Made by a program: the position numbers and the translations under genes
The notes under the pieces: model-generated
What the model was told of the DNA's origin: nothing
Database searches by the model: none
Seen by the model: the letters and a program-made list of their open reading frames with translations, nothing else
NCBI GenBank assembly: GCA_965649825.1
Contig: OZ287694.1
Span: 1,053,197-1,117,196 of the forward strand
DNA length: 64,000 bases
Reading direction: 5' to 3'
Source of the DNA: Penicillus capitatus
Lineage: Eukaryota; Plantae; Chlorophyta
In this document: positions 4,105 to 53,928 of the stretch, one piece after another
Layout of the letters: each line of letters begins with the position of its first letter
Numbering within the stretch: position 1 is the first letter of the stretch

Positions 4105-6004
4105 ATGAATCTCGCCGAAGAACTGACGACGGTGACGCGTTCGATCGAGCGATTGAAGAGACGGTATGCCAGGCGTCGTGCTGAGATGGCACAGCTCCAC
4201 AACAAAGGAGCACGTCAGGAGTTATCCACACCAAGTTTTCCAGAACCCGAGAGTCGCGAACCGCCGCCGGCCAAAGCGCCTTCGGATCCAAACATGACCA
4301 TTAAGCGCCTCTTAGCCTGTTGTCTTCTTGCCCCCAGCACTTCGATTCCTGTCGATACCTTGGGACTACATTCGAAGGTCTCGATGACCCATTCTGCTCC
4401 TCCGTACAGTCGGTCTCTGAATTGAGAGCGAGTTCTGCAGATTTGTCAAGGGCCGTCGGGAGGAGAATATGAGAGATGTCTAGAGGCTTTGCACCTGTCC
4501 AGCCTCGATCCTATTGTCCATGAACTGGCCGCAGCCGACCCGCCTTACATCGATGTCGAGCGCACAGAACTGAGTGGACAATCGTGTTTTATCATTTTGA
4601 CCCTGAACAAAGGGAGATTAGCAAGGTCATTGATTTCAGACGAGTCAAAGAGTGAGATGTTTGTATGTTCAGTTTGACTCAGATGATGATGCCAACAGAG
4701 GAGAGACGCCGACCATGGGGTTCTGATGGACAGAGTGATCCCAGAAGAATACCACAGCGCAGTGCAAATTGGCAACAGACGCCCCCTCCACGTCATCCCA
4801 TGGATCTGAGTACACTACTGGGACGCAAATCTGTCAAAGAGCAACAACAGCATGAACAGTAAGTACATCTCCATCACCACAGCACCGGAATGCACTCTTA
4901 TGACTCGCAGAAGCGAAGAGCTTTTGGAACTCATCCAAAAACGAACGGCGGGAGATTGGGCAACGGTTGAAAAGTTCCAAACTGGCGGAACAGCCGTTCG
5001 CGAATTTTGCGTGCACCTAACAAAAGATGAGTGTCGGAGGTGAGATGATGCACAACACTTGCACGTGTAACGCGCCTGATGGTTGTACAGGAAGAATCAT
5101 TCAATGTATGCCTGTCCCCATCTGCATTTCAGGAGATTGATCTTTCCTTGGACAGATGTCTCTATGGGCAACTGCTCCTATCTGGACACCTGTCGAAACG
5201 TCAACACATGCAAGTACGTGCACTACGAGTTGGATCCAGATCCAGACGCTTACACTCCTGAACATGTCAAAGCGCTTGAGAAATCGAGAAACAGAGTGCC
5301 TGGGTATTTACAAGCCTTGCCGGAACCGCAGTGGATTAAGTGCGATGTCCGGTCGTTCGATATGACCATTCTTGGAAAGTTCGGCGTCATCATGGCAGAT
5401 CCCCCATGGGAAATTCATCAAGATCTGCCCTATGGCACAATGGATGACGATGAAATGCGAAAGCTCAATATTGGCTGTCTGCAAGACGAAGGTGTCATCT
5501 TCCTATGGGTAACAGGCCGTGCCATGGAGCTCGGTCGAGAATGTCTCCAAATCTGGGGCTATCAGAGAGTCGATGAATTGATCTGGGTGAAGACAAATCA
5601 ATTACAAAGACTGATACGAACAGGACGGACAGGTCATTGGCTCAACCATTCCAAGGAGCACTGTCTTGTTGGCATCAAAGGTCCAGACGATCGATAACGA
5701 TCTTACTTGACCCCTTATGTCGTGATTGTCCTTTGCAGGTAATCCGGAACTGAATCGGTTTGTGGACTGTGACGTTGTGGTGGCCGAAGTCCGTGAGACG
5801 TCCCGAAAGCCGGATGAGATGTATCCATTGTTGGAACGACTGAGTCCAGGAACGCGGAAACTTGAACTCTTTGGCAGGATGCACAATCTGCGCAATGGAT
5901 GGGTGTCTCTGGGCAATCAGCTCAACAACTCCTACATCATTGATCCAGAACTCAAGGCGAGATACGAACATGTCTATGGCCCCATCAAGGAACCAGAAAA
6001 GTAG
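4105..6004 (+). CDS. METTL3: mRNA m6A methyltransferase catalytic subunit (MT-A70 family, METTL3/MTA), multi-exon
   Basis: CCCH zinc fingers (EFCVHLTKDECRR|KNHSMYACPHLHFRR; CSYLDTCRNVNTCKYVHY), catalytic DPPW motif, GRTGHWLNHSKEHCL, RETSRKPDEMY. GT-AG introns at 4378-4440, ~5040-5090 and ~5680-5738. Confidence 0.95.
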
Positions 6005-22643: not shown

Positions 22644-23829
22644 TTAGCTACCCAGAAGAGGTCTCTCCACATCGTTTTGTGCGTGCTGCGAAGCCCACCT
22701 CGAAACAATAACGGCGTCAATGAAGAGCTGGCTGATGTGGCCAACGATGCACGGGATCGTGATCAGGCCCAGGTCTCCGATCTCGTCTTCGTTGAGGTAC
22801 GAGATCACGGTGACCGAGACGGGGAGCGTCTTCTGGCTGCTCATGAGGAGGACGGCCTTCATCTCGCGCTCATCGAGTCGGAGGAGGCGAACGGCGACGT
22901 AGTTCATCGACAGAAAGACGAGGTGCATCGACACGCCGGCGACGACGACGCGGGCAACGTTGCCGGCCGACTGGTCCAGCAGGGTGTCCCTCGATGTGCT
23001 CAGGTTCTGCCAGACGATGCAGATGAGGTTGGCGTTGCTGATCAGACCCAGCGCCACCTTGTGCGCTTTCACGAACTCCTGTATTCTCTGGCTGCTCTCC
23101 CGGATGGCCTTGCCGACGATCAGCGGCACGAGGACCGTCAGCGCCATCTTCATCAGCAGGTTGGCGGCGTCGATCTCGACGCTGGTGCCCGATGCCACGA
23201 TCCACTGGACGAAGAAGGGGACGGTGAGGATGCCGATGAGGTTCGTGGCGACCGTCAGCATCAGCGCCAGCGTGCCGTTCCCGTACGCCTGCGTGACCAG
23301 CGTGACGCCGGACGTCAGCGTGGTCGGAACGATGGCGAAGATGGCCAGGCCGATCGAGAACTCTTCCGGTCCCAGCGGAATGTTGATGAGTCCGAAACCG
23401 AAACATGGCGTGACCAGGAGAATTGCGATCAGACCGTACACGAGTCCACGATGAGCTCTGAGTGTGGCTAAGATGTCTTCTGTCTTCAATGTAAGTCCAG
23501 AGATGACGAAGATCACGAAAACGCACGTAACATCCATCACTCCCTGTCCGCGAATCTAAACAGAAGCCCAATTATGGTACTTAGTTCTGAACAAAAGTTC
23601 GCAGCACAACTTTGACGGCCTTGCTCTTTTTACCGGGAAGCGGCCAGATGAGCGCCAAAACGAGTACGAGTAGAAAACCAAGCGGCAGAAAATTCTTGAC
23701 GACAAACTCTCTTAGTCGTCCACACATAGTGGACTTCGGTTTGTGGCGTGGGTTGCTTGTCGGTGCAGCATGCGTTATCTCTGGCTCTGCGAAGCATTGG
23801 TGTGAAGTCAATGACTGTTCTGTTTGCAT
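22644..23829 (-). CDS. Sodium/metabolite (bile acid:Na+ symporter-like, BASS4/SLC10A7-type) transporter, copy 1
   Basis: NFLPLGF, PTTLTSGVTL, NLIGILTVPF, SQKTLPV, IPCIVGHISQL; many TM segments. Confidence 0.9.
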
Positions 23830-25300: not shown

Positions 25301-26548
25301 CTACACGGTCGGGTTTTCCTTAAGATACTGTGAAGCCCACCTCGAAACAATAACGGCGTCAATGAAGAGCTGGCTGATGTGGCCAACGATGCAAGGGATC
25401 GTGATCAGGCCCAGGTCTCCGATCTCGTCTTCGTTTAGGTACGAGATCACGGTGACCGAAACGGGGAGCGTCTTCTGGCTGCTCATGAGGAGGACGGCCT
25501 TCATCTCGCGCTCATCGAGTCGGAGGAGGCGAACGGCGACGTAGTTCATCGACAGAAAGACGAGGTGCATCGACACGCCGGCGACGACGACGCGGGCGAC
25601 GTTGCCGGCCGACTGGTCCAGCAGGGTGTCCCTCGATGTGCTCAGGTTCTGCCAGACGATGCAGATGAGGTTGGCGTTGCTGATCAGACCCAGCGCCACC
25701 TTGTGCGCTTTCACGAACTCCTGTATTCTCTGGCTGCTCTCCCGGATGGCCTTGCCGACGATCAGCGGCACGAGGACCGTCAGCGCCATCTTCATCAGCA
25801 GGTCGGCGGCGTCGATCTCGACGCTGGTGCCCGATGCCACGATCCACTGCACGAAGAAGGGGACGGTGAGGATGCCGATGAGGTTCGTGGCGACCGTCAG
25901 CATCAGCGCCAGCGTGCCGTTCCCGTACGCCTGCGTGACCAGCGTGACGCCGGACGTCAGCGTGGTCGGAACGATGGCGAAGATGGCCAGGCCGATCGAG
26001 AACTCTTCCGGTCCCAGCGGAATGTTGATGAGTCCGAAACCGAAACATGGCGTGACCAGGAGAATTGCGATCAGACCAGCAACTAATCCTTGCCAAGCTT
26101 TGAGTGCTGCCCACACATCTTCTGTTTTTAGTGTCGCTCCAGATATTACGAAGATGATAAAAACATTAAATGTGCTAATCACACCGTAATCTTCAACCTA
26201 CATCAAAGAGGAATTGATTTCCCTTCTCTACATCGTCTACAGGAATTCCGACCTCCCATTCTTTTACTTTTTCTCCTGGAGTCGGATAAATCAGCGCCAC
26301 AACTAAGACGAATAAGAATCCTAATGGTAGAAAGTGCTTAATGAGCTTTTCTTTAAGCCAGGGCCTAAAGCAGACACTTCTGCATTCGAGTTCCCAAATG
26401 TGCTTTTCAACCACGTCATACGCCACGAGAGTGTCTCATCTTTCACATTTTTTAACAACGAAACATCTTTTTCGACAGGAACTTCGATTTCCAGTCCCTC
26501 GTACGTTACACTTGCGGCGTTTTTATCCATTGACTCTGAAGTCATCAT
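25301..26548 (-). CDS. Sodium/metabolite (BASS4/SLC10A7-type) transporter, tandem copy 2
   Basis: Same motifs as copy 1; upstream exons HFLPLGFLFVLVVALIYP; probable ATG 26548. Confidence 0.9.
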
Positions 26549-29639: not shown

Positions 29640-31114
29640 TTATTCCTTCGTCTTGGTAACGTCAACTTCCTTCTCTTCTTTATCTGCCGAAGAAGGCTCG
29701 TCTGTTTCGGATCGCATTTCATCAAAGTAGGAATGCTCTAAGGTCGCCACGATCTAAAAGACATAACAGCCATACCTCAGTCCATCATTTTCCAGATGGC
29801 GACCCCCTACGCTGATGCGCTTGGCCGGGTCATAGGTCAGAAGCTGCTCCAGGAGATCAAAGGCCTTATCATCGATGCCATCTTCGAACCTCTCTCTCAA
29901 CTTGTACTGTTTAAAGCATGGGTATTCGCTAGGCACGACACACAGGCGCTGCAAATAGGGTGCACAAGTATGATGTGTTCAGACTGGTAGTCGGTGAGTG
30001 TATGAAATTGCGACCATGTTTCCAAGGTGGGCGTGCCCATTGTCTCAAATATCTTCACCAGCTGGTGGAATTCGCCACTTCCACAAAACAGTGCCTTCTA
30101 AGCTCTCTGTTTTCCCACAGGTGCTGCATCGACGCAGTGGACTTACTCTTAGAAAAAACTCAGCAAAGATGCATCCGACACTCCACATATCGACAGCGTG
30201 GCTGTAGTACTCTGCGCCCAGCAGCACCTCGGGAGCGCGATAGTAGAGGGATCCGATTTCGTGTGTCAGCTGCGGAACTGGCAACGCGTGTGTTCTGCCC
30301 AGTCCAAAATCTGCGATCTTCAGGGATGGTTCGTCCTCCTGCGTTGTGTCGATCAAAATGTTCTGCGGTTTCAGATCACGATGAAACATTCCTCTGCCAT
30401 GCATCGAACGCAATCCCGTACACAACTGAAACATCAGACTCTGCATTCACCAAAGCCAGTCACTCTATACAAGGCCATACGTTCGGGCACTACTTTGATA
30501 ATACTATCTGGAATGGGCGATGATCGGCGATGGATATACTTGCGCAAATCACAGGACATACAGTCGAACACCTGCATCGCCTTGGCTTGGTTGCATAATC
30601 ATTGAGCACCACGGCGTTACCAAATTGAGTTCGCAGTCGAACATTCCTCGATCGAAATCGTAGAACACATCTCGAAGTCTGCCACCAACATCGCGGCAGA
30701 ACGAAACCTCTTCCGCTGCTCAGGCGACGGACGTACTGGATGACGTGGGGATTGTCGGCCAGGAGTCTCAGAATCGTTATCTCGCGCATCGTCGTTGCCG
30801 GAATACCGGCGTCTATATCCTGCGAGAGCACACAGTCGTGATGACGCCACCGTGGGCATAGCAGACGGCACGGCCTTCGCCGTTTTGCCGCCCCACGATG
30901 CGCCCCATCCGCAGCGTCCTATCTATGGCGTTACCTCGATCACAATCTTCTTGATGGCGACTGTGTCGCCCGTTTCCTCGTCCTTGGCACGCCATACCGA
31001 TCCATATCGTCCCTCTCCAAGTCGCGTCCCTTTCTTCTCGATGCGATAGCGTTTCCAAAACTCTCTGCTCTTCTCCGTACGGATGCAACTCTCCGTCGAC
31101 GACGACATCGGCAA
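29640..31114 (-). CDS. Divergent cyclin-dependent kinase (CDKB/CDKA-like), multi-exon
   Basis: LGEGRYGSV, VAIKK, GIPATTMREI (PSTAIRE-equivalent), HRDLKPQNIL, KIADFGLGR, YRAPEVLLG, DMWSVGCIFAE, LLTYDPAKRIS. Confidence 0.9.
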
Positions 31115-31208: not shown

Positions 31209-33279
31209 ATGATATTATCCAGCAGGTGTCGCTTTGCTGTTTCGACACTCGTCGCGCTAACGATCGTCGTTTTCGCGTTCGCCCTGCATCAAGCGGATGA
31301 AAAGTTTCGCGCTCTGTCGCACTTGTTCGAAGAGATGGACGATAATCACGACGGACAGGTCGATGAAATGGAGGCGAAGAAATACATAGGCGAACAGATA
31401 GGCGGACATGAGTTCGATAGCCCCGTCGAACTGACAGTGGCATTTCATCACATGGTCACGAATATTGACAAGGACATCGAAACACCAAGCCACACAATAT
31501 CGCAAGAGGAGGTCAAACAACACTTGGTCGATTTACAACACGTTCCTTTCCAACAGACAACGCTGCAGCAGAGAACAGCTCTGTCGTTTAGGCGGTTTCG
31601 GTCATGGAATGGGTGCAGCATGGACTGGGACTGCCGCAGTACGCTGAGACTTTTCGCGAGAATGTCATCACAGCTGCCGATTTTCCGCTGCTTGTCAACG
31701 ATGAAGGCAGCATCCTTGAAGAGGAGCTTCTTGTTGTCTCCCTCATTAACAGCAATGCCATCTCATGATCCCATCCCTTGTAGATTTCTAAGCGACTGCA
31801 CCGAAATCAGATCGTGCGGGGGATGAAACGATTAATTTTGGGATTGGGCGAATTGCCTTCACCCCCACAAGTACGCAACCGTCCATCCTATGGGATTTGA
31901 AGAATCGCATGGGGGCTGAACAGATCGTTGGATGTTGGAGTGAAGCAATGACACAGACGATGTTGCAATGGAAGGCGCCATCGAAACAGACACAGCCTCC
32001 TGTGCACAAATACGTGATCGAGAGTCGGCAGGACACGTCATGGACATTGATGTCAGAGGTGGAGGCTGTTTCTCAGAAACAGTATGTGCAACGCGTGGAT
32101 CATGGCTCTGGCAAATTTATCTTCAGAATCGTGGCATGGACAGTTTATGGCCGCAGTCCCTATGCCTTCTTCTCCGACTGTCTTCCATCACCACAGCCAT
32201 CTTATCAACGCATGCTGTCTGCTCGTGCTTCCCCTTCAACAGCCAAGACTACGGCATCGAAGAGCATTTCTGTCGAAGAAGCAACGGCACACGGAATGAA
32301 AAACGAGAAAGAGATGGCGAGGGCTGGATATTGGAGTGTTTTTGTGATTTTTGTGACGATTGCCTTGCGTATACTCACAACAAGGAACATTGCGATTCTC
32401 AAATGCTGTTTGCTTTCTGAACTGGAGAAGATGGCCTCCAATCTCAGATTGCATTTCCTTGAACAGCGTTTGAGACGCATTGAGCGACGAGAATGCGAAT
32501 ACTGCAAGACACACTGTCGTCGTCACAAAACGGAAGATCGTCCTCAAGAATCGCCTCCAGCTCTGGTGCGACAGAAGGCGATCAGTCATAAGATCAACAA
32601 ACCCACTCAGCACTTTGGTCTGGATGAGGCGTCCATGGTCGTTTCTAAATCCAGTCCATCACTCGGCGATCGCAAGACCGACTATCAATTGACAGAATGG
32701 AATGTCGATGAGGCGACGGCATCTATCGAGAAGCTGCCTCTTCCGGAGTACACGACCAGCGTTTGGGATGACAGTGAAGGGGGTCCATTGCAGTCTCGGG
32801 CATCATCCACCTTCTCCGACGTTCAAGTCGAGCTTGTTGAAGGGCAATGTGCTTTCGAAGGGTAAGCCCGTTTTGCCTCTGCTCAGAAGCAGCTTTGATT
32901 TGACAGGTGTTCGCGGCAGTGGAAAGGACTGGCTCGATTTCGCAATCGATGGTCTCGCCATTTCTGCTCGGTTTGTCTAAGAACCTACTGCTACGAACAC
33001 ACGCATTACTCATCTCATGGCTCTTTTGGATACTGTGGACAGCAGTCGAGCTGTGTCTGCGAAAACTGCTTCTACAAACTCTCTCCTGCCACCCAGATGC
33101 AGCTGGAGGCGATAAATAAACTGGACAAGAGTCTTTCAAAGAAAGCAGACTTGGAGCGAGGATGCAGTCGACGCGAACAACGTTTGAGTATGCGCTCCCT
33201 TTTCCGATCTGCTCCGAAGTTTGGAAGCAACAAGAGCGTAAAAATACAGAAAGAAAGACAAGAGACTGACAAGACTTAA
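31209..33279 (+). CDS. STIM-like type I membrane protein: signal peptide - EF hand - SAM - FN3 - TM - Cys/His zinc finger (5 exons, 623 aa)
   Basis: Exons 31209-31541, 31592-31732, 31784-31870, 31924-32861, 32907-33279 join in phase with GT-AG introns. Canonical EF loop DDNHDGQVDEME; SAM EWVQHGLGLPQYAETFREN; FN3 LQWKAP...YVIE...FIFRIVAWTVYGRSP; TM YWSVFVIFVTIALRIL; CAFEGC...RHFCSVCLRTYCYEH...VCENC. Confidence 0.8.
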
Positions 33280-33446: not shown

Positions 33447-34215
33447 ATGAGGGTGTGCGTTTTTTGCGGCTCCTCGTACCTAGCCAACAAAGTACACGTC
33501 GAGGCCGCAAAGCATGTTGCCAATGCCATCGTTGCACGACGTGCACAACTTGTCTACGGAGGTCGACGTCCAATCCCTAACCGCATCGACGTTCCTGTGT
33601 CCAGGCGGCTCATTGGGTCTCATGGGCATCGTTGCCCAGATCGTGCGTGCTTCCAACCCTCGTCCTGTTTCCACGTCCAAGTCATGTCTCAGGTTTCGCA
33701 GGATTTAGGTAAAGATGCTGTCCTCGGGTTCATTCCAGAGAAATTTATCGAGGTCACGCCTCAAAGTAAGGTGGGTGTATCGTCGTTAAGGTGTGTGTGG
33801 ACGTCAGGGAATGGGCGAACACATTGGAGTGACCGTTGTTGTCAAGAGTATCGAAGAGCGTAAGCAGAAAATGTTTGAGAACAGTGATATCTTTCTCGCT
33901 CTTGCTGGGAGCTATGGTACAATGGAAGAGATCTGTGCCGCAATGACGCAGTATACGGTGTGTCAGAGCAAAAAGCCAGTCGGACTGCTCAACACGAATC
34001 ACTTCTATGACAAACTCATCGAACAGTTCGACGTCGCTGTTCAAGAAGTCTCTCTTCTGAGCGTTTCATGAGACACCACACCCGAACGACCGTCGTTTCA
34101 GGGATTCATGAAAAAAGAGTACCGAGAAGCATTGATTGTATCGGAACAGCCAGAGGATCTCCTTGCAGCTCTGAAGGATCGTTGGGAGCAAGATCGCCAG
34201 GACACACAGAATTGA
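33447..34215 (+). CDS. LOG: LONELY GUY family cytokinin riboside 5'-monophosphate phosphoribohydrolase-like protein, multi-exon
   Basis: RVCVFCGSS, LVYGG|GSLGLMG, ERKQKM, FLALAGSYGTMEE (PGGxGTxEE variant), KPVGLLNTNHFYD. Confidence 0.9.
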
Positions 34216-45292: not shown

Positions 45293-48200
45293 TCATTCCT
45301 GCAATCGCCTGGAGGAATTCTTCCAGGCGTCAATCTTTGCTCGCAATCTGTGGTTGTGGCGAAGCGTAGTGCTGCTGAATTTGAGATTGCTGACCGGAGA
45401 GGTGTCCTTTTCCTTCATCCATTCAGAAATTGCAGTCAGCTCGTAGGTATGGCCATCAGATGCAACGACTGGGGTTTTCATGATTTGCTAAACGCACACA
45501 GCAGAACGATCATGTCCATGACTCTCTTCGTGAGATGGACGCATACTTTGGTGATGGGACATTTGAAGGCTTCAATATTATACACGACTCCGCTATCCTC
45601 TTCTGGATCGTCATGCCTAGACTGCCCCTCATGCTACCATAGCAATAGACTTTAAAAAAGAGTGAGAAAAGTGTGAATGTATGGCACCTGGTTCGGGCCG
45701 ATCCGATTGAGCAGAAGGATGACCAGGCGTTCTCGCTCACGTTTGTCGTATCCCTCTCCAATAGCATCCCCAATCACCTCATTACACTGAAATCCTGTCA
45801 CATCAATAATCTCACTCTTATGGAAAAGTGAGAGAGAAGAGTGATGACTGACCTTTCTTGTTCTTTGAATCCAAACTTATCGCTGGAGACTCTAGAAGAC
45901 TCTCGACAGCCTCTATCTGGCCATACATGCAAGCAATGTGTAATGCCGAATTTCCTGCAGCGATACAGCAGAGATGAAGACAGGCAGACAGCACTCTCTA
46001 CCTTCACTGTCTTGTGCATCGAGGGAGACTTCATGATGCATGAGACGATGCACGACCTTGCTAAAGCCATTCTTTGCAGCTAAGAACAATGGTGTTTGTT
46101 TCTTTGCATTCCTGGCGTTGGGATCACAGCGACTGCACAACAACAAGTGCACCTAGATAGCAAAGAGTGGCTGGTGTAAAGATGGTATGACATGGGCTGT
46201 GGAGAAACGACCGTTTCAACTCCTCCGATCTCGGCAGCTGCATGCAGAGGTGTGTTACCATCTGCAGCAGCACAGGAGGGATAGGCTTGATTTCTTAACA
46301 ACAAGGAAGCAGCTTCATAGCTATTGGAGGCAGCTGCCATATGGAGGGGGGTCTTGCCATGCTTATCATTTGCATGTACATCTGCTCGATATGCCAACAA
46401 AAGAGATACAGCCATAGAAAAACCGTTGTGGCAGGCGTAATGCAAAGGCATTTGACCTGCTTCATCTTTCGCTTTTACATCCGCTCCTAAACACACAAGC
46501 GCTCTCATACGTATACCCACAGAGTCATGCATTCCTTCGTACCATTACTTAACAAGAACTCCACCATTTGTGGAGAACTGCCAAGTACAGCATAATGCAA
46601 GGCAGATATTGATCCAGGACAGCTGGCAAGATTAATACGGGCTTGTCGCAGAACAAGGAAATGGACTGTGGTAGTGTGACCATTTCGCACGGCATAGAGT
46701 AACGGTGTCAGTCCTTCATCTCCAAAGACGTTCATATCTGCACCATCATCCAACAGGTTCTTCACCTGTGTCGTATCTCCACGTGCAGCCGCTTCTACAA
46801 GCATCTGCACAACACGATCCATCATAAGCAGAATGATGATGTGACGTCTGGAGTGTGAGATACATACGTAGGATGTTTCGGTGGGCGGACGTTCAATGAT
46901 TTCGCGGATGCGTTGCGTTCGTCCTCCATCAGCTGTGACCCATTCACAGATCACATCCGATGGCGTCATATCCATGTTTGTCTTGCGATCTGGATCTGCA
47001 CCCGAACGTAACAGCAAACGCACCATTTCTAGATCACCTCTGCAACAGAGACACATATATGGACACTGTTATGGAAAGTGAGATGCAGACCGTGCACAGG
47101 CAACATGGAGGGCTGTCCAGTTTTCAACCGTTTGTATGTTAACGTCGAATGGTACCGTTGAATTCAGAATCATCTGTGCAATACTCTTATTTCCATGAAT
47201 CGATGCCAAGTAGAGCGGTGTTATTCCATCTGCTTTGGCAATGCCTGGATTGGCTTCCCAATCGATCAATTCCTTTACAGCTCCGGCCCATTGCTTCTCG
47301 ACTGCTAAGTGCAATGCTGTGGAACCATCGCTGATTCTCTTTCGGTCGATGACAGATCTGTCCGTGGCCAGCAGGAGAGCGACCACGTGCATGTAGCCGT
47401 TTCTGGCCGCTGTATGGAGCGGCAGTTCGCCGTTCTTCGTCGTGGCATTTGTTCTGGCACCACAATCGATCAGGACCTGGGCAACATGCACTTGTCCAAA
47501 GGCACAGGCTCCATGCAGAGCTGTTGCGTTGGAATTGATTGTTTCGTTCACTCGTGCTCCGTGCTGCAGCAGTTTCCTGGCAACTTCTACATATCCGTGG
47601 CGAGATGCGGCATAGAGTGGAGTCCATCCATGCTCTTCCACGCGGACATTCGGATCTACTCCTGATTCTAAGAGCCGATTCACGAGACCAGCATTTCCGC
47701 TATTAGCAGCAACAAAGAGATTGGGGCGTCCCTTTGCATCTACGTCGATAGATCCTTGCCGTCTGGAAGGAATATTTGTGGCGTCTGTCTGGGATCCAGA
47801 ATCTTGGCTTCCAGTACGCTTCGCTTTAGGGAGTCTCTTAAAGACACTGGAGTGTTTTCCGTCCACTGGGTTGTGATAATGATGATGATGATGATGCACC
47901 TCACTATCAACGCTTCCCACATGATCACGTGCAGATGAAGGGCCTTGGGACATTTTGTGACGTTCGGCGGACGGAGACGCGTTCAATTTGGTCACTGTGG
48001 ATGATTTGTTCATCGATAGGGATACTTGAGGGATAGACATGCTGCCACTTCTTGACAGGCGCTTGCTCTCTGATCTCACCACAGACGCTCGTTTCGGACT
48101 CTCTGTCACCGAATGGCGATAATCTCCGCGGACAGATCCTGGATGACGCTGAAGTCGACTCCAGTTAAAGGATGTCTGTCGTGGCGTACGAGCCGTCTGC

Positions 48201-50618
48201 GGTTTCTTCTTGTATTCCTGTGCCGTGTGGATTCTGGCAGCATCTTGACTTGGATGCGACATGAATTCTTTAATGTCATACAAACGAAAACCTTCGGCAG
48301 CACGCCGAGCAGTAATCTGATCTATAATCGAAGGTCGTGGTCTGGCAGTGTCGGATGATGCAGTATCTGGCGGCAGTGATTCTCGATAATCGCCTAACGG
48401 AGATGAAGGTTCCTGGACACTGCTCATTTCTTCTTCTTCTTCATTTCCAGGATCCTCACCCGTTTCGGGCTCTATTTCAATGCATTGTAGTTTCATTGGA
48501 GATGCACTCTTGGGCTCCACTGTTTCTTCGAAGTGCCGTGGAGAAACTGTTTTTCGTTCTCTCGGAGAAACATTGCGCGGCGAAGCGGTCTTCACACTCT
48601 TCTTCTCTTGGATCTTCTTTTTCTTGTAGCGGCTGAAAGTCGATTCGATCAGGCCTCTCTCTACGACGCTCAGAGATTTCTTTGAGCCGATGACATCCTC
48701 CGGTCGTTGATGAGACATATTCGTCGCCTGAACATATGCTCCTGCTGTCAACAGCGTCTCAATGACGGCCAGATGACCCATGCTAGATGCAATATGCAGT
48801 GGCATGTTGCCTTCCTCTGTGCATGGATGATCGACTTTGGCTCCTCTCTTTAGCAAAAACCGAACCATGTAGACTTGTCCACGTTCGGCACTGGTATAGA
48901 GTGGTGTTCCAATGTCGAACTGACAGGCCTGTATATCAGCTCCAGCGTTTAATAGGAGACGGGCCAAGGGAATGTCTCCACGTGCCGCAGCAAAATGCAG
49001 GGCGGTATGCCCTTTCTTTCTCTTTCGATGCACATCGGCACTGTGTCTCAAGAGATAGTCTGCCACATCAACGTGACCGGATTTGGCAGCCAGATGCAGC
49101 GGCGTCTCTCCTGCTAGATTGTGAACATCCACTTCAACACCGTTCTTCACCAAGTATTGCACCACATTCATTTTGCCCTTGAGTGTTGCCTCGTGCAGGG
49201 CATTCATGGATCGCTCCCCACACATCAAAGGATCTGCTCCAAACTGCACGAGCAGCTGGACAATGGAGAGATGACCAAAGGCTGCAGCTATGTTTAGCAG
49301 AGGCTTTGGTTCTTTACTGACAATGCGTTCCAATCCCAGATGCTGAACGAGGAGTTCCACAATCTGAGGATCGAGTTTGAATGAGATGATGGTGAATGAA
49401 GAGTGAGAGAGAACCTTGGTGAATCCTCTCTGTGTGGCAACAAGCAATGGTGAAGGCTTCGATGTGCTTGTCTCGTAGACAGCTGCGTTTCTCTTAACTA
49501 AGATTTCGACAGTTTCGATGTGGCCTCCGTTGGTTGCCATTAGCAATGGTGTAGAGCCACTATCCGTCTGGACAGCAGAGAAGTTTGATGGACAGTTGTT
49601 TGATGTGACATCTCCATACCTTGGCGTTTTTATTGGCGCCATGGTCGAGCAATTCGCTCAAAACAGCGGCATGTCCTCCCAAGGCAGCGACATGAGCAGC
49701 AGTTCTCAGATTGGAACCCACGGCTTCGGGCTCTGCTCCCCTTTTTAAGAGCATCTGGACGAGTGGTAGAATTCCGCCATTGCATGCCAGCATCAATGGA
49801 GTGAAGTTGTCTGCTTGTCGTGCATCCAAACAGGCACCGCCCATATCTAACAGCACACACCCTATTCAACAAAACACCGTCCCGTTTCAAAAGACCCATA
49901 ACCAATAAGCATTTCTGCCGCCTCGACGTTTCCGTTCATGGCAGCAACGTGCAATGGAGTTGAGCAAGTGCCTGTTGTGATGCACTCGATATCTGTACCG
50001 TACTGCAGCAGCACTTTAATGGCATCAGGATTGCCGGATTGACAGGCAGCATGGAGGGGCGTCCAGCCTCGATGATTTTGCTGGTCAATGGATGCACCAG
50101 CTTGACAAAGTGTTTTCACAAGGTTGGCATGTCCGCCAGCAGAAGCCACGAACAATGATGTCGTTGATCCCGATGTCACTGCATCTAACTCAGCTCCGTG
50201 TCTACATTACGGTCTCACTCATCAAAAAGAGTGAGATATTATAAAGTGCTGTGACACCCACCGTATGAGCAATTCGAGGACGGGAAGGCGACCAGAGGCA
50301 GCAGCGATGTGCAGCGGCGTCGTTCCATTCATTTTTCTGAAATTGACATTTGCCCCTTTCTCAACAAGACGAGTCACGATTTCGAGGCTGCCCACTTCAC
50401 ATGCGACAAGCAGGGGACTGACACCAGTCCCATCCACAGCATTGATATCAGCACCTACATATCATGAACCATCTCCACTTCAGCATCACTCCCTCTTCTA
50501 TATCCTTTGTACCATTTTCAATCAGGGAACGGCACTTGGTGGCATCCCGTTGCCGGATCGCAAAATGAAGTTCAGAATTCTGTTTCCCTGGAGCATCGGC
50601 CTTGATTGAGCTCTCCAT
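45293..50618 (-). CDS. Large ankyrin-repeat protein with C-terminal U-box (putative E3 ubiquitin ligase), multi-exon
   Basis: More than 20 TPLH/TALH/G-A-D/N ankyrin repeats across ORFs 50448-45913 in two blocks around an S/R-rich linker; FKCPITK|QIMKTPVVASDGHTYELTAISEW...SPVSN U-box. Confidence 0.85.
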
Positions 50619-51543: not shown

Positions 51544-52497
51544 TCAGTCACAGCTGTGTTCGATATGACGCAATCTCGATGACCAGTAGTTCGATCGAAT
51601 CGGATCGATCGTTGCACACTGTCGCAAGATCTTTGCGCACGACGCCAAGCACTGTCGACATATTCCTGCTGTCACATTCACCTGACTCGAAGCGATGGCG
51701 AAATACGCATCGGCCAGAAATTCGAGGCAGGGCAAGCAGACGGGCTGCTCTCTAAGAATCTCGTGACAAAACTTCACGACATCTGTCATTTTCTCGCCGA
51801 CACTTGTGTTGCGGACAATTGATTGGCAGAAGTTCCAGCCGGCCTCAGAGTGAGGTGCTTTGCGCAGAAGCACTTTTGTCTTTTCATACTCCGCGAGATG
51901 ACGTGCAGGAGTGGGGAGATATTGCAGCAGATAGTACTTTTGATTCCAGGCTGAGTTGTTGAACACATCCTCCTCCAGCATGTTATCGACGTAATCTATC
52001 TCCTGTTCTATCAACTCCGTCCGTTTCGCTTCTTCGACATGATTCAGAACGGCCTGACGATGTGACCAAGCATGGTAGTTCTTGCTGTCTTGCTGCAATG
52101 CGATGTCGGCATGGCCGAGTTCTTCCTCGGCTGTCGTTCGGCCATCGAGATAGACCTGACGCCTGAAATTCCATAATTGATAATTCTTAGGCGTTTCTTC
52201 TAGAATACCCCCGATGAGTGTCTCTCCATCGGTGTCTGAACCGCCTGTTATTCACGACATCACCAAACAGTGTCAGAATCGACGAGAACGATGACCTGCA
52301 CCGCGCAGACCGGTCAGATATCGCTGCCAGGCGGTGTAACTGGTTGGAACCTGCTGAATGGCGCGTCTGCTAACATCGCGCAATGCTGTAGACGATTCCA
52401 CTTCGTGGAATGTCGCATAGAGTTCCTCGAGAACATCCCGCGTTTCCTGTGTGTATGCTATACTGATTGCCTTCCTGGTTTCGTGCGAGCTGGTCAT
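51544..52497 (-). CDS. FNTA: Protein farnesyltransferase/geranylgeranyltransferase-I alpha subunit
   Basis: PPTA repeats PTSYTAWQ, PKNYQLWNFRR, SKNYHAWSHRQ, VFNNSAWNQK, PHSEAGWNF; C-terminal IDPIRSNYW. Confidence 0.9.
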
Positions 52498-52536
52498 CGG
52501 CAGAGCGCAGAGATCATTTACGATTTTATCAGCACG

Positions 52537-53928
52537 ATGCCGCTCAACATTCGCGTGAAATCGGACCGGCAGGACAGTCGACCGGGAGAGACTTACCGTG
52601 CCACGATCGAGCTTGCGAATACAGATGACTTTGAAGTCGTCTACGTCGTCGAGGGCGTCGCCGTGACCTGTCATGGCGTCGAGGTCCTCGACCCGGGGTG
52701 GGTGTCACCCAAGTACTACAGCAGTAGAAATGACCCACCCTACCGAAAAGACAAGCGACGCATCGTTCGGTCTCTGTTCTCGGCCCATGCGAACCAAATC
52801 CTGGAGAGATTGCTATTCCTGGCTCCAGAACAGGAGAAACAATTTAGTGTGGCATGCTGTCTTCCCGAAAAGCTCCCACCCAGTTTCAAAGGCACAAGTG
52901 TGCGCTATGTCTACGAGTTATGTGTCCATGTCAAGTACCGGAAAGGAGCTTACGGTGCCAGAGATACCCTCAGGAAGTCTGTGGAGAAACAAGAACCACA
53001 TCGAATATCATTCAGACAGCCATTCTGTGTCTATCCAGATTACGTCAATTCTATGCTGAAAAGCAGCAAGAGCACGGAAGAGCTGTCTCGAGATGACATT
53101 CCTATGATGGACGTGTGTTTCCGTTCCGAAGATGAAGTGATGCTTCAATGGTCCGAGGCATCTGACGATGACAAGACAAGTTCGACAGATGAGTCCAATC
53201 TCTCAAGAGTGATCAGCGAAAGCGGCGAGAGTTCATCCACGGCAAATATGGCTCTGCGTTTGGGTATGGCTGGATCCGCTGCAGATTCACGAAGCCTCTC
53301 ACGTTTCAGTGTGTCTCGATCGAGTCTGCCGGAAACAGAGATGAGTTATCAACCGCCGCTTCGACACAGAACCTCAAGTATCACGCATGCCGAAGCGCAG
53401 TTATTGGTTAGCCTGTGTGTCCATCCTCAGACGTTTAATCTTCGTTTTGGCAACGAGTCTGTTGTCCTCTTTTCCTTTAATCCTTCAATGTCATGTCCAC
53501 TACGTCCGGGATCGATGCTGGGTGGCGTTCTGCGTCTGTCGGGGATGGTGGAGAAGAATGGTCACCATCAGCAGCAGCAGCAGAACTGGAGATGTCAGTC
53601 CTATACAGTCATGTTAGAAACGGAAGAAGAAGTCGTGGAGACGTGGCAACGCGATACTGCTCAAGACAAGAGAGTGATCCGTCGTCTGCACTGTGAGCAC
53701 ACAGAGTTTACAGGAGATGTGCTCATGACCAATTTCATGTTTACTATTCCTTCCAATGCACCTCCATCTTTCAAAACACCCCTTTTATCTCTCAGATGGG
53801 TGCTAAAATTCGAGTTTGAAGTGGGTCGCTGTCAGGACTGGATGGAGATGGGGGATGTGCAACCGACATCGAATGATACAGAGCCTCTCTTATGGCAGCT
53901 GCCTTTGACAGTGTATCCTCGTTACTAA
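52537..53928 (+). CDS. RGP1: RGP1 (RAB6A-GEF complex partner protein 2)
   Basis: LPPSFKGTSVRYVYEL, LETEEEV, APPSFKTPLLSLRWVLKFEF, LLWQLPLTV: arrestin-like Rgp1 motifs. Confidence 0.85.
   Translation: MPLNIRVKSDRQDSRPGETYRATIELANTDDFEVVYVVEGVAVTCHGVEVLDPGWVSPKYYSSRNDPPYRKDKRRIVRSLFSAHANQILERLLFLAPEQEKQFSVACCLPEKLPPSFKGTSVRYVYELCVHVKYRKGAYGARDTLRKSVEKQEPHRISFRQPFCVYPDYVNSMLKSSKSTEELSRDDIPMMDVCFRSEDEVMLQWSEASDDDKTSSTDESNLSRVISESGESSSTANMALRLGMAGSAADSRSLSRFSVSRSSLPETEMSYQPPLRHRTSSITHAEAQLLVSLCVHPQTFNLRFGNESVVLFSFNPSMSCPLRPGSMLGGVLRLSGMVEKNGHHQQQQQNWRCQSYTVMLETEEEVVETWQRDTAQDKRVIRRLHCEHTEFTGDVLMTNFMFTIPSNAPPSFKTPLLSLRWVLKFEFEVGRCQDWMEMGDVQPTSNDTEPLLWQLPLTVYPRY

Follow-up and report, generated by a model that had tools for sequence, protein, structure and literature searches.

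An algal membrane protein family that joins a STIM-like luminal EF-SAM module to a fibronectin type III domain and a FYVE-derived zinc finger

The stretch of DNA analysed here (hereafter, the window) comprises 64,000 nucleotides of contig OZ287694.1 from the green alga Penicillus capitatus, and at 31209-33279 of its forward strand it carries a spliced gene for a predicted single-pass membrane protein whose luminal part resembles the EF-SAM module of STIM proteins. Five exons join into an open coding sequence of 1872 nt, which corresponds to 623 amino acids (aa); the four introns (50, 51, 53, and 45 nt) are all of the GT-AG type, and when the three forward frames are read, coding switches frame at each of them. 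This phase-consistent five-exon model, proposed in a preliminary description of the locus, is borne out by a syntenic orthologue (L002) on a contig of a second metagenome assembly, ERZ26696514. In the DNA alignment of the two loci, all four introns lie at identical positions in L002 with GT..AG retained, and identity amounts to 84-91% in the exons, 71-79% in introns 1-3, and 89% in intron 4. The latter stretch, if it were coding, would be frameshifted because of a 1-nt indel between the two loci, whereas the exon indels (12, 3, 3, and 3 nt) are all multiples of 3. The differences fall on codon positions 1/2/3 in the numbers 63/47/159, and the spliced open reading frame (ORF) of L002 is intact at 626 aa. 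Furthermore, protein alignments with the homologues from Caulerpa lentillifera and Bryopsis cross all four junctions free of gaps. Judged by these alignments, the locus is a conserved protein-coding gene under purifying selection, and it is best explained as an expressed-type nuclear gene encoding a type I membrane protein.

The predicted protein begins with a hydrophobic N-terminus, which agrees with the signal peptide of the preliminary description at the level of hydropathy. The EF-SAM module follows. Its first EF loop, DDNHDGQVDEME, conforms to the canonical pattern D-x-D/N-x-D/N-G-x-I/V-x-x-x-E, as had been noted, and its ligand positions are kept across 26 diverse relatives (D1 in 25, D/N3 in 26, D5 in 24, G6 in 26, and E12 in 25 of the 26). 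The second EF loop, described earlier as degenerate, indeed departs from the canonical form in the window protein, where three residues are inserted into it; in the AlphaFold2 model it pairs with the first via a short strand, like the "hidden" EF-hand of STIM. The SAM domain (residues 111-175), noted earlier with its LPQYAETFR motif, scores 30.9 bits with Pfam SAM_1 and 22.8 bits with SAM_2, and thereby passes the respective cut-offs of 23 and 20.5. Pfam EF-hand_STIM1 (PF25578) scores residues 30-64 at 23.0 bits (E 8.9e-5), which is under its cut-off of 32.2, and the relatives reach 13-23 bits.

Comparison with proteins of known structure points in the same direction from several sides. Used as a single query with phmmer against all PDB sequences, the window protein matches the EF-SAM of STIM2 (E 6.3e-5) and STIM1 (3.3e-4), each in one colinear stretch over residues 30-169. 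A five-sequence family profile raises these matches to 5.1e-9 and 1.7e-8, respectively, and a 26-sequence EF-SAM profile matches STIM2 at 1.7e-13, STIM1 at 9.7e-12, and C. elegans STIM at 2.2e-11, colinearly over EF and SAM; among the 60 chains listed for this profile, solely the three STIMs match over both parts. Profile-profile alignment with STIM1/2 (hhalign) gives a probability of 98.4% and an E-value of 6.5e-15 over 123 columns. The AlphaFold2 model of residues 27-184 (pLDDT 89, pTM 0.85) has as its best three Foldseek matches in the PDB C. elegans STIM (6PW7, TM-score 0.74), STIM1 (2K60, 0.61), and STIM2 (2L5Y, 0.68), and its remaining matches are calmodulin-like EF pairs with TM-scores below 0.45. 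STIM ranks first by profile, profile-profile, and fold comparison alike. By these comparisons, the luminal module is shown to be specifically STIM-like, its EF-SAM being homologous to that of STIM. The best explanation of the predicted structure is a compact unit, in which a canonical EF-hand pairs with a non-canonical one and the SAM domain packs on both.

The preliminary description dealt with this protein in a green alga, but it is no lone case. By an exhaustive hidden Markov model (HMM) search with the EF-SAM profile, the module occurs in at least 911 clusters (50% identity) when matches up to E 1e-3 are counted; 315 clusters reach E<=1e-10, and 57 reach E<=1e-30. Members occur in Chlorophyta (Caulerpa, Bryopsis, Gonium, Edaphochlamys, Astrephomene, Picocystis, a pedinophyte, and Micromonas commoda), in diatoms (Ditylum brightwellii and Proboscia alata, both as MMETSP transcripts), and in one haptophyte, Pavlovales sp. 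CCMP2436; since MMETSP transcriptomes contain members, the family is transcribed. The closest homologues are those of Caulerpa lentillifera (46% identity at 92% coverage) and Bryopsis sp. KO-2023 (36%). Most full-length relatives (600-850 aa) possess an N-terminal hydrophobic segment, the EF-SAM module, and one transmembrane helix, and 17 proteins (P0016, P0019, P0020, P0021, P0024, and others, including that of Pavlovales sp. CCMP2436) carry two complete tandem EF-SAM modules before the helix. The finger pattern described below is present in 62 of 162 proteins, a sample consisting mostly of the best-scoring matches of the EF-SAM HMM search. In public databases, members are named "hypothetical protein", "SAM domain-containing protein", or "Calmodulin"; for example, Gonium pectorale GPECTOR_61g852 and Micromonas commoda XP_002502942.1, which are membrane proteins of 600-700 aa, are called "Calmodulin" in UniRef, an automatically assigned and misleading name behind which the STIM-like module goes unnoticed. 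It should be noted that a word-indexed homologue search with the 26-sequence EF-SAM profile returned mostly small generic EF-hand proteins and yielded no list of named taxa.

Between the SAM domain and the membrane lies a fibronectin type III (FN3) domain. Among PDB sequences, FN3 chains of titin are matched with a whole-chain E-value of 9e-10, receptor phosphatases match as well, and the signature residues W203, P206, W259, Y262, G263, and S265 are invariant in the alignment of homologues. With Pfam fn3, the window protein scores 12.5 bits, under the cut-off, and its relatives score 27-61 bits, above it. The conserved Cys residues at the two ends of the domain may form a C191-C273 disulfide and would fit an oxidising, non-cytosolic location. 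Hydropathy reveals two hydrophobic segments in all (residues 6-29 and 321-346), the second of which contains the single transmembrane helix. Because the 42 residues from position 334 (the end of this helix onward) have a net charge of +5, the C-terminal part is placed in the cytosol; a short basic juxtamembrane helix directly follows the transmembrane one. A linker of about 115 residues (377-490) between helix and finger is poorly conserved, and the cytosolic part aligns with family members only. The FN3 domain and the single transmembrane helix of the preliminary description are both upheld, and the predicted order of signal peptide, EF-SAM, FN3, transmembrane helix, and finger is supported as real and conserved. 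A "SAM-like remnant" (TEWNVDEA...LPLPEY) that had been read in the cytosolic part must be attributed to chance, as its Smith-Waterman score of 22 compares with a shuffle mean of 21.6 and is equalled or exceeded by 42% of shuffles.

The cytosolic finger is a derivative of the FYVE domain. An alignment of 31 fingers that covers every branch of the family has exactly 12 invariant columns, each of them Cys or His (C496, C501, H518, C520, C523, C528, H531, H537, C543, C549, C551, and C554), which implies three zinc ions. The pairs C496/C501, C520/C523, C528/H531, and C551/C554 follow the order of the eight-ligand FYVE cross-brace and align with the ligands of Vps27, ALFY, and EEA1. A five-sequence finger profile gave just chance-level matches to eS31/S27a and FYVE in the PDB, and the 31-sequence profile was needed; with it, solely FYVE domains match at E<0.01 (Vps27 1.6e-4, ALFY 5.3e-4, and EEA1 4.5e-3), in end-to-end alignments. 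The top eight Foldseek matches of the finger model are likewise all FYVE domains. With Pfam FYVE (PF01363, cut-off 27.8 bits), the window finger scores 13.8 bits (E 0.066) and its relatives 23-27, the best of them 27.4. The FYVE ancestry of the finger is thereby shown. The remaining ligands H518, C549, H537, and C543 would form a third zinc site at or near the phosphatidylinositol 3-phosphate (PI3P) pocket; H518 and C549 sit where FYVE domains line that pocket. The finger lacks WxxD, an invariant Cys replaces the Arg of RVC (CVC), and SRHFCS stands in place of RRHHCR, so that the second His and the last Arg of R(R/K)HHCR are missing. The full RRHHCR is retained solely in tandem-EF-SAM relatives, namely in the fingers of P0016 and P0019.

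The preliminary description ascribed both FYVE-like and AN1-like features to the finger, and it is the former that stand. Pfam zf-AN1 has no match in the window protein and matches one of five members at E 0.026, and AN1 domains are absent from the PDB profile and Foldseek matches. The AN1 pattern C-x2-C-x(9-12)-C-x(1-2)-C-x4-C-x2-H-x5-H-x-C is departed from in the first pair (Cx4C), in an 18-residue spacer, and in the last spacing (x5). The K/R-rich end that had also been pointed out is real, with a net charge of +9 over residues 557-623; of 56 family members, 39 carry a net positive charge C-terminal to the finger, and the diatom members stop right after the finger with almost no tail. Many chlorophyte tails (e.g., those of P0003, P0022, P0025, P0036, P0038, and P0063) contain a recurrent basic amphipathic Trp motif, such as QRWRSAVTKIQAVQAF or LLWERAATKLFAITRFR, which resembles a calmodulin-binding or membrane-binding helix; the window protein and that of Caulerpa have this motif in weak form or not at all.

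Table 1. Features of the STIM-like gene and its product, and other genes of the window.
Feature	Positions	Strand	Residues	Remarks
N-terminal signal peptide or signal anchor	31209..31289	+	1-27	Hydrophobic core FAVSTLVALTIVVFAFAL; Kyte-Doolittle 19-residue mean 2.26
STIM-type EF-SAM module	31296..31849	+	30-180	Contains introns 1 and 2; supported by sequence profiles, hhalign, and Foldseek
Canonical Ca2+-binding EF loop (predicted)	31338..31373	+	44-55	DDNHDGQVDEME; ligand conservation in the family
Fibronectin type III domain	31859..32187	+	184-275	Spans intron 3; conserved Cys191 and Cys273 at its two ends
Single transmembrane helix	32323..32385	+	about 321-341	Hydropathy; same feature in homologues
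FYVE-derived zinc finger	32848..33072	+	496-555	Spans intron 4; 12 family-invariant Cys/His
C-terminal helix and basic tail	33073..33276	+	556-623	
Exon 1	31209..31541	+	1-111	Start codon, signal peptide/anchor, canonical EF-hand, second non-canonical EF-hand; ATG and frame kept in L002
Intron 1	31542..31591	+		50 nt, GT-AG, phase 0; 72% identity to L002 vs. 88-91% in flanking exons
Exon 2	31592..31732	+	112-158	Bulk of SAM domain, including LGLPQYAETFR
Intron 2	31733..31783	+		51 nt, GT-AG, phase 0; 71% identity to L002
Exon 3	31784..31870	+	159-187	Final SAM helix (LHRNQIVRGMKRLILGLG) and PSPPQ linker
Intron 3	31871..31923	+		53 nt, GT-AG, phase 0
Exon 4	31924..32861	+	188-500	FN3, transmembrane helix, juxtamembrane helix, linker of low conservation, the finger's first Cys
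Intron 4	32862..32906	+		45 nt, GT-AG, phase 2; 1-nt indel vs. L002
Exon 5	32907..33279	+	500-623	Remainder of zinc finger, conserved helix, basic tail, stop codon
MT-A70 (m6A methyltransferase) exon	5083-5697	+		
SBF-like ORF	22644-23540	-		Pfam SBF_like, E about 1e-55
SBF-like ORF	25301-26182	-		Pfam SBF_like, E about 1e-55
CDK-like protein kinase, divergent	30800-31114	-		First coding exon <100 nt from the STIM-like start codon
LOG/lysine-decarboxylase-like gene, spliced	33447-34100	+		Pfam PF03641; about 170 nt past the STIM-like stop
Large ankyrin-repeat protein	47069-49642	-		
Rgp1/arrestin-fold protein	52270-53928	+		

The surroundings of the gene are very compactly spaced, with the kinase gene on one side and the LOG-like gene on the other (Table 1). 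The L002 region is about 86% identical at the DNA level, comes from a sister species, and has the same gene order as the window (TBC, kinase, STIM-like gene, LOG, S10). Conserved synteny with the divergent kinase was also considered for two Mamiellophyceae-like contigs (L003 and L005), and it was rejected as coincidence, the kinase there being MAP3K-like and 32-34% identical. Elsewhere in the window, the two SBF-like ORFs (sodium/bile-acid symporter family) are near-identical and look like a recent tandem duplication, and the MT-A70, ankyrin-repeat, and Rgp1/arrestin-fold neighbours are all ordinary nuclear genes. Prokaryote-style gene calls on the window and L002 contigs fragment spliced genes. 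As such calls split the STIM-like gene into unrelated-looking ORFs, no full-length product came back from the protein search.

The lineages in which the family is found give it a particular context. According to a comparative-genomics study of 2020, STIM originated close to the base of Metazoa, and Orai is expanded in the haptophyte Emiliania (PMC7016017). A 2024 review of STIM lists plants as being without it (PMC11506743), and a diatom study of the same year states that Orai is present, and a STIM1 homologue absent, in green algae, early plants, and diatoms, which "likely possess a different protein" (PMC11085791). The earlier remark that green algae have Orai and lack an established STIM partner is thus stated in the literature, and for diatoms as well. 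No description of the EF-SAM/FN3/finger family was found in the searchable full-text literature, although it may have been mentioned in passing before.

In STIM, loss of Ca2+ destabilises the EF-SAM module, drives oligomerisation, and activates the cytosolic part. By analogy, the algal protein may be a luminal sensor of a Ca2+ store, in which Ca2+ loss clusters the cytosolic fingers and tails, and this reading seems to us about evenly balanced between right and wrong. With Ca2+ bound, EF-SAM would be compact and the protein quiescent. A drop of Ca2+ in the compartment would loosen EF-SAM and let it self-associate, which would draw the cytosolic fingers and basic tails together. Once clustered, these could gain avidity for a target, which might be either a facing anionic membrane or another protein, perhaps Orai or a different channel, or a small GTPase, and the outcome would be a contact site or an activated effector. 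Ca2+-controlled clustering is the most economical model because FYVE-type and polybasic modules bind membranes weakly as monomers and rely on avidity. Within this scheme, we infer Ca2+ binding, Ca2+-dependent oligomerisation, the compartment, and the target, and the endoplasmic reticulum (ER) is the likeliest compartment.

Several observations weigh against a store sensor of this kind. When the SAM domain is taken alone, STIM2 is the best match in the PDB (1.7e-8), and the SAM domains of Shank and liprin are close behind; since SAM by itself barely separates STIM2 from these proteins, the STIM specificity resides in the whole EF-SAM module. The finger model is moderate (pLDDT 74.5) and its Foldseek E-values are not significant, and because most residues of the PI3P pocket are missing, PI3P binding is doubtful. 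The lack of CAD/SOAR that the preliminary description implied is upheld: at E<=10, the window protein is matched neither by Pfam SOAR nor by a STIM coiled-coil family, and it shows no long coiled coil, so that gating of Orai by the known STIM mechanism is excluded. Read by eye, the C-terminus (...ETDKT, without KKXX) shows no evident ER-retention signal. FN3 domains are typical of cell-surface ectodomains, and STIM is without FN3. Finally, no Orai was seen among the larger window ORFs scanned with Pfam, a non-exhaustive scan of the 64 kb.

Some of these points bear on where the protein resides. It might instead be a sensor or resident of the endosome, vacuole, acidocalcisome, or contractile vacuole, with EF-SAM sensing the Ca2+ of that lumen and the finger binding a phosphoinositide in cis or recruiting trafficking machinery instead of forming a bridge to a second membrane. 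The FYVE ancestry of the finger, the complete RRHHCR of some relatives (P0016 and P0019), and the lack of a visible ER-retention motif would all suit such a location, as would the large acidic Ca2+ stores discussed for algae (PMC8318260). However, the PI3P-pocket residues are replaced in the window protein and in most chlorophyte members, and the analogy with STIM points to the ER; we consider residence in such a compartment unlikely.

It is similarly doubtful whether the protein is a counterpart of STIM in the full sense, i.e., an ER store sensor that opens an algal Orai, directly or indirectly, via its finger and tail in place of SOAR/CAD. The family is found in exactly those lineages for which Orai without STIM has been reported, namely Chlorophyta, diatoms, and haptophytes, a correspondence seen at the level of lineages; its EF-SAM is homologous to that of STIM, and the basic tail of most chlorophyte members recalls the polybasic end of STIM1. 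Nonetheless, SOAR/CAD is absent, diatom members are nearly tailless after the finger, and no genomic linkage to Orai is seen. Taken furthest, the family would be the "missing STIM" of photosynthetic protists, an ER sensor that clusters a three-zinc finger, forms ER-plasma-membrane contacts, and switches on Orai or other Ca2+ entry. We offer this as a speculation with the chances clearly against it; if it were true, the EF-SAM store-sensing module would be older than animals and wired to two unrelated cytosolic outputs.

A place at the cell surface appears somewhat less likely again. There, the protein would serve as a receptor or adhesion protein with EF-SAM and FN3 outside, Ca2+ holding the module folded in a structural instead of a signalling role, and the finger used for endocytic sorting. 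FN3 domains are indeed typical of ectodomains (compare the titin and receptor phosphatase matches), the Cys residues at both ends of the domain are conserved, and STIM1 itself was first described as a surface molecule, a fraction of which reaches the plasma membrane. Against this, sea water contains about 10 mM Ca2+, at which a canonical EF-hand would be filled at all times, yet its ligands are strictly conserved; the similarity at the level of the module is to a store sensor, and the tandem EF-SAM variants suggest tuning of a Ca2+ response. Very improbable, lastly, is an artefact in which exons of separate genes were misjoined or the locus is a pseudogene, for although prokaryote-style calls on the source contig (ENA ERZ25074695) give separate ORFs of 205 and 305 aa, this is refuted by the full-length colinear homologues in Caulerpa and Bryopsis and by L002, with its junctions kept, its spliced ORF intact, and its differences biased towards third positions.

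Whichever role the protein plays, a STIM-type EF-SAM module on a single-pass protein is widespread (more than 900 clusters stand behind it) in lineages reported to have Orai without STIM, where it is combined with another cytosolic output. Either the EF-SAM sensor module arose outside Holozoa, or it was transferred laterally. The finger represents a new FYVE derivative with three predicted zinc sites. For algae, which contribute heavily to primary production, the Ca2+-store sensor proposed here is a concrete candidate, and it makes directly testable the standing question of how Ca2+ stores are sensed or Orai is gated in "STIM-less" algae.

Among known systems, the AN1 (ZFAND) finger resembles the algal one in the spacing C-x2-C-x4-C-x2-H-x5-H, as read from the sequence, whereas the first pair with its spacer and the last H-x-C of the algal finger do not fit. 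Protrudin (ZFYVE27) is likewise membrane-anchored and bears an atypical FYVE domain; its structure 1X4U is the second Foldseek match of the finger model, at a non-significant E-value of 0.5. Residing in the ER, protrudin links this compartment to other membranes via non-PI3P lipids. However, it has no luminal sensor, it is anchored by a hairpin and carries an FFAT motif, and there is no homology beyond the finger. The FYVE domains of EEA1, Vps27, Hrs, and ALFY/WDFY3 share with the algal finger a cross-braced core whose eight ligands follow in the same order, the basic-His-x-Cys-x-x-Cys strand, the FC..(C/H) found as FCQEH in Vps27 (with His at the sixth ligand), and the closing xVCxxCF. They differ from it in that the algal finger has no WxxD, has RHFCS for R(R/K)HHCR and an invariant Cys for the Arg of RVC, scores below the Pfam cut-off, and possesses four extra invariant ligands (H518, H537, C543, and C549), the first pair of chlorophyte fingers being Cx4C.

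The closest comparison is with STIM1 and STIM2 (EF-SAM structures 2K60, 2L5Y, and 6PW7). Both systems have an N-terminal signal sequence, a canonical and a non-canonical EF-hand united with SAM in one compact module, the motifs LPQY(A/E)ETFR and HR(N/Q)(Q/K)(I/L), a single-pass type I topology, and a basic C-terminal end. Unlike STIM, the algal protein has an FN3 domain between SAM and the transmembrane helix, and in place of CC1-CC3 and SOAR/CAD its output is a three-zinc FYVE-derived finger; sequence identity to STIM is 15-25%, the algal family lies outside Holozoa, and some of its members have tandem EF-SAM modules. Because the defining SOAR/CAD effector is absent, the protein stands outside the STIM family in the strict sense; the most fitting description is that of a new architecture in which the sensor module of STIM is put to use again.

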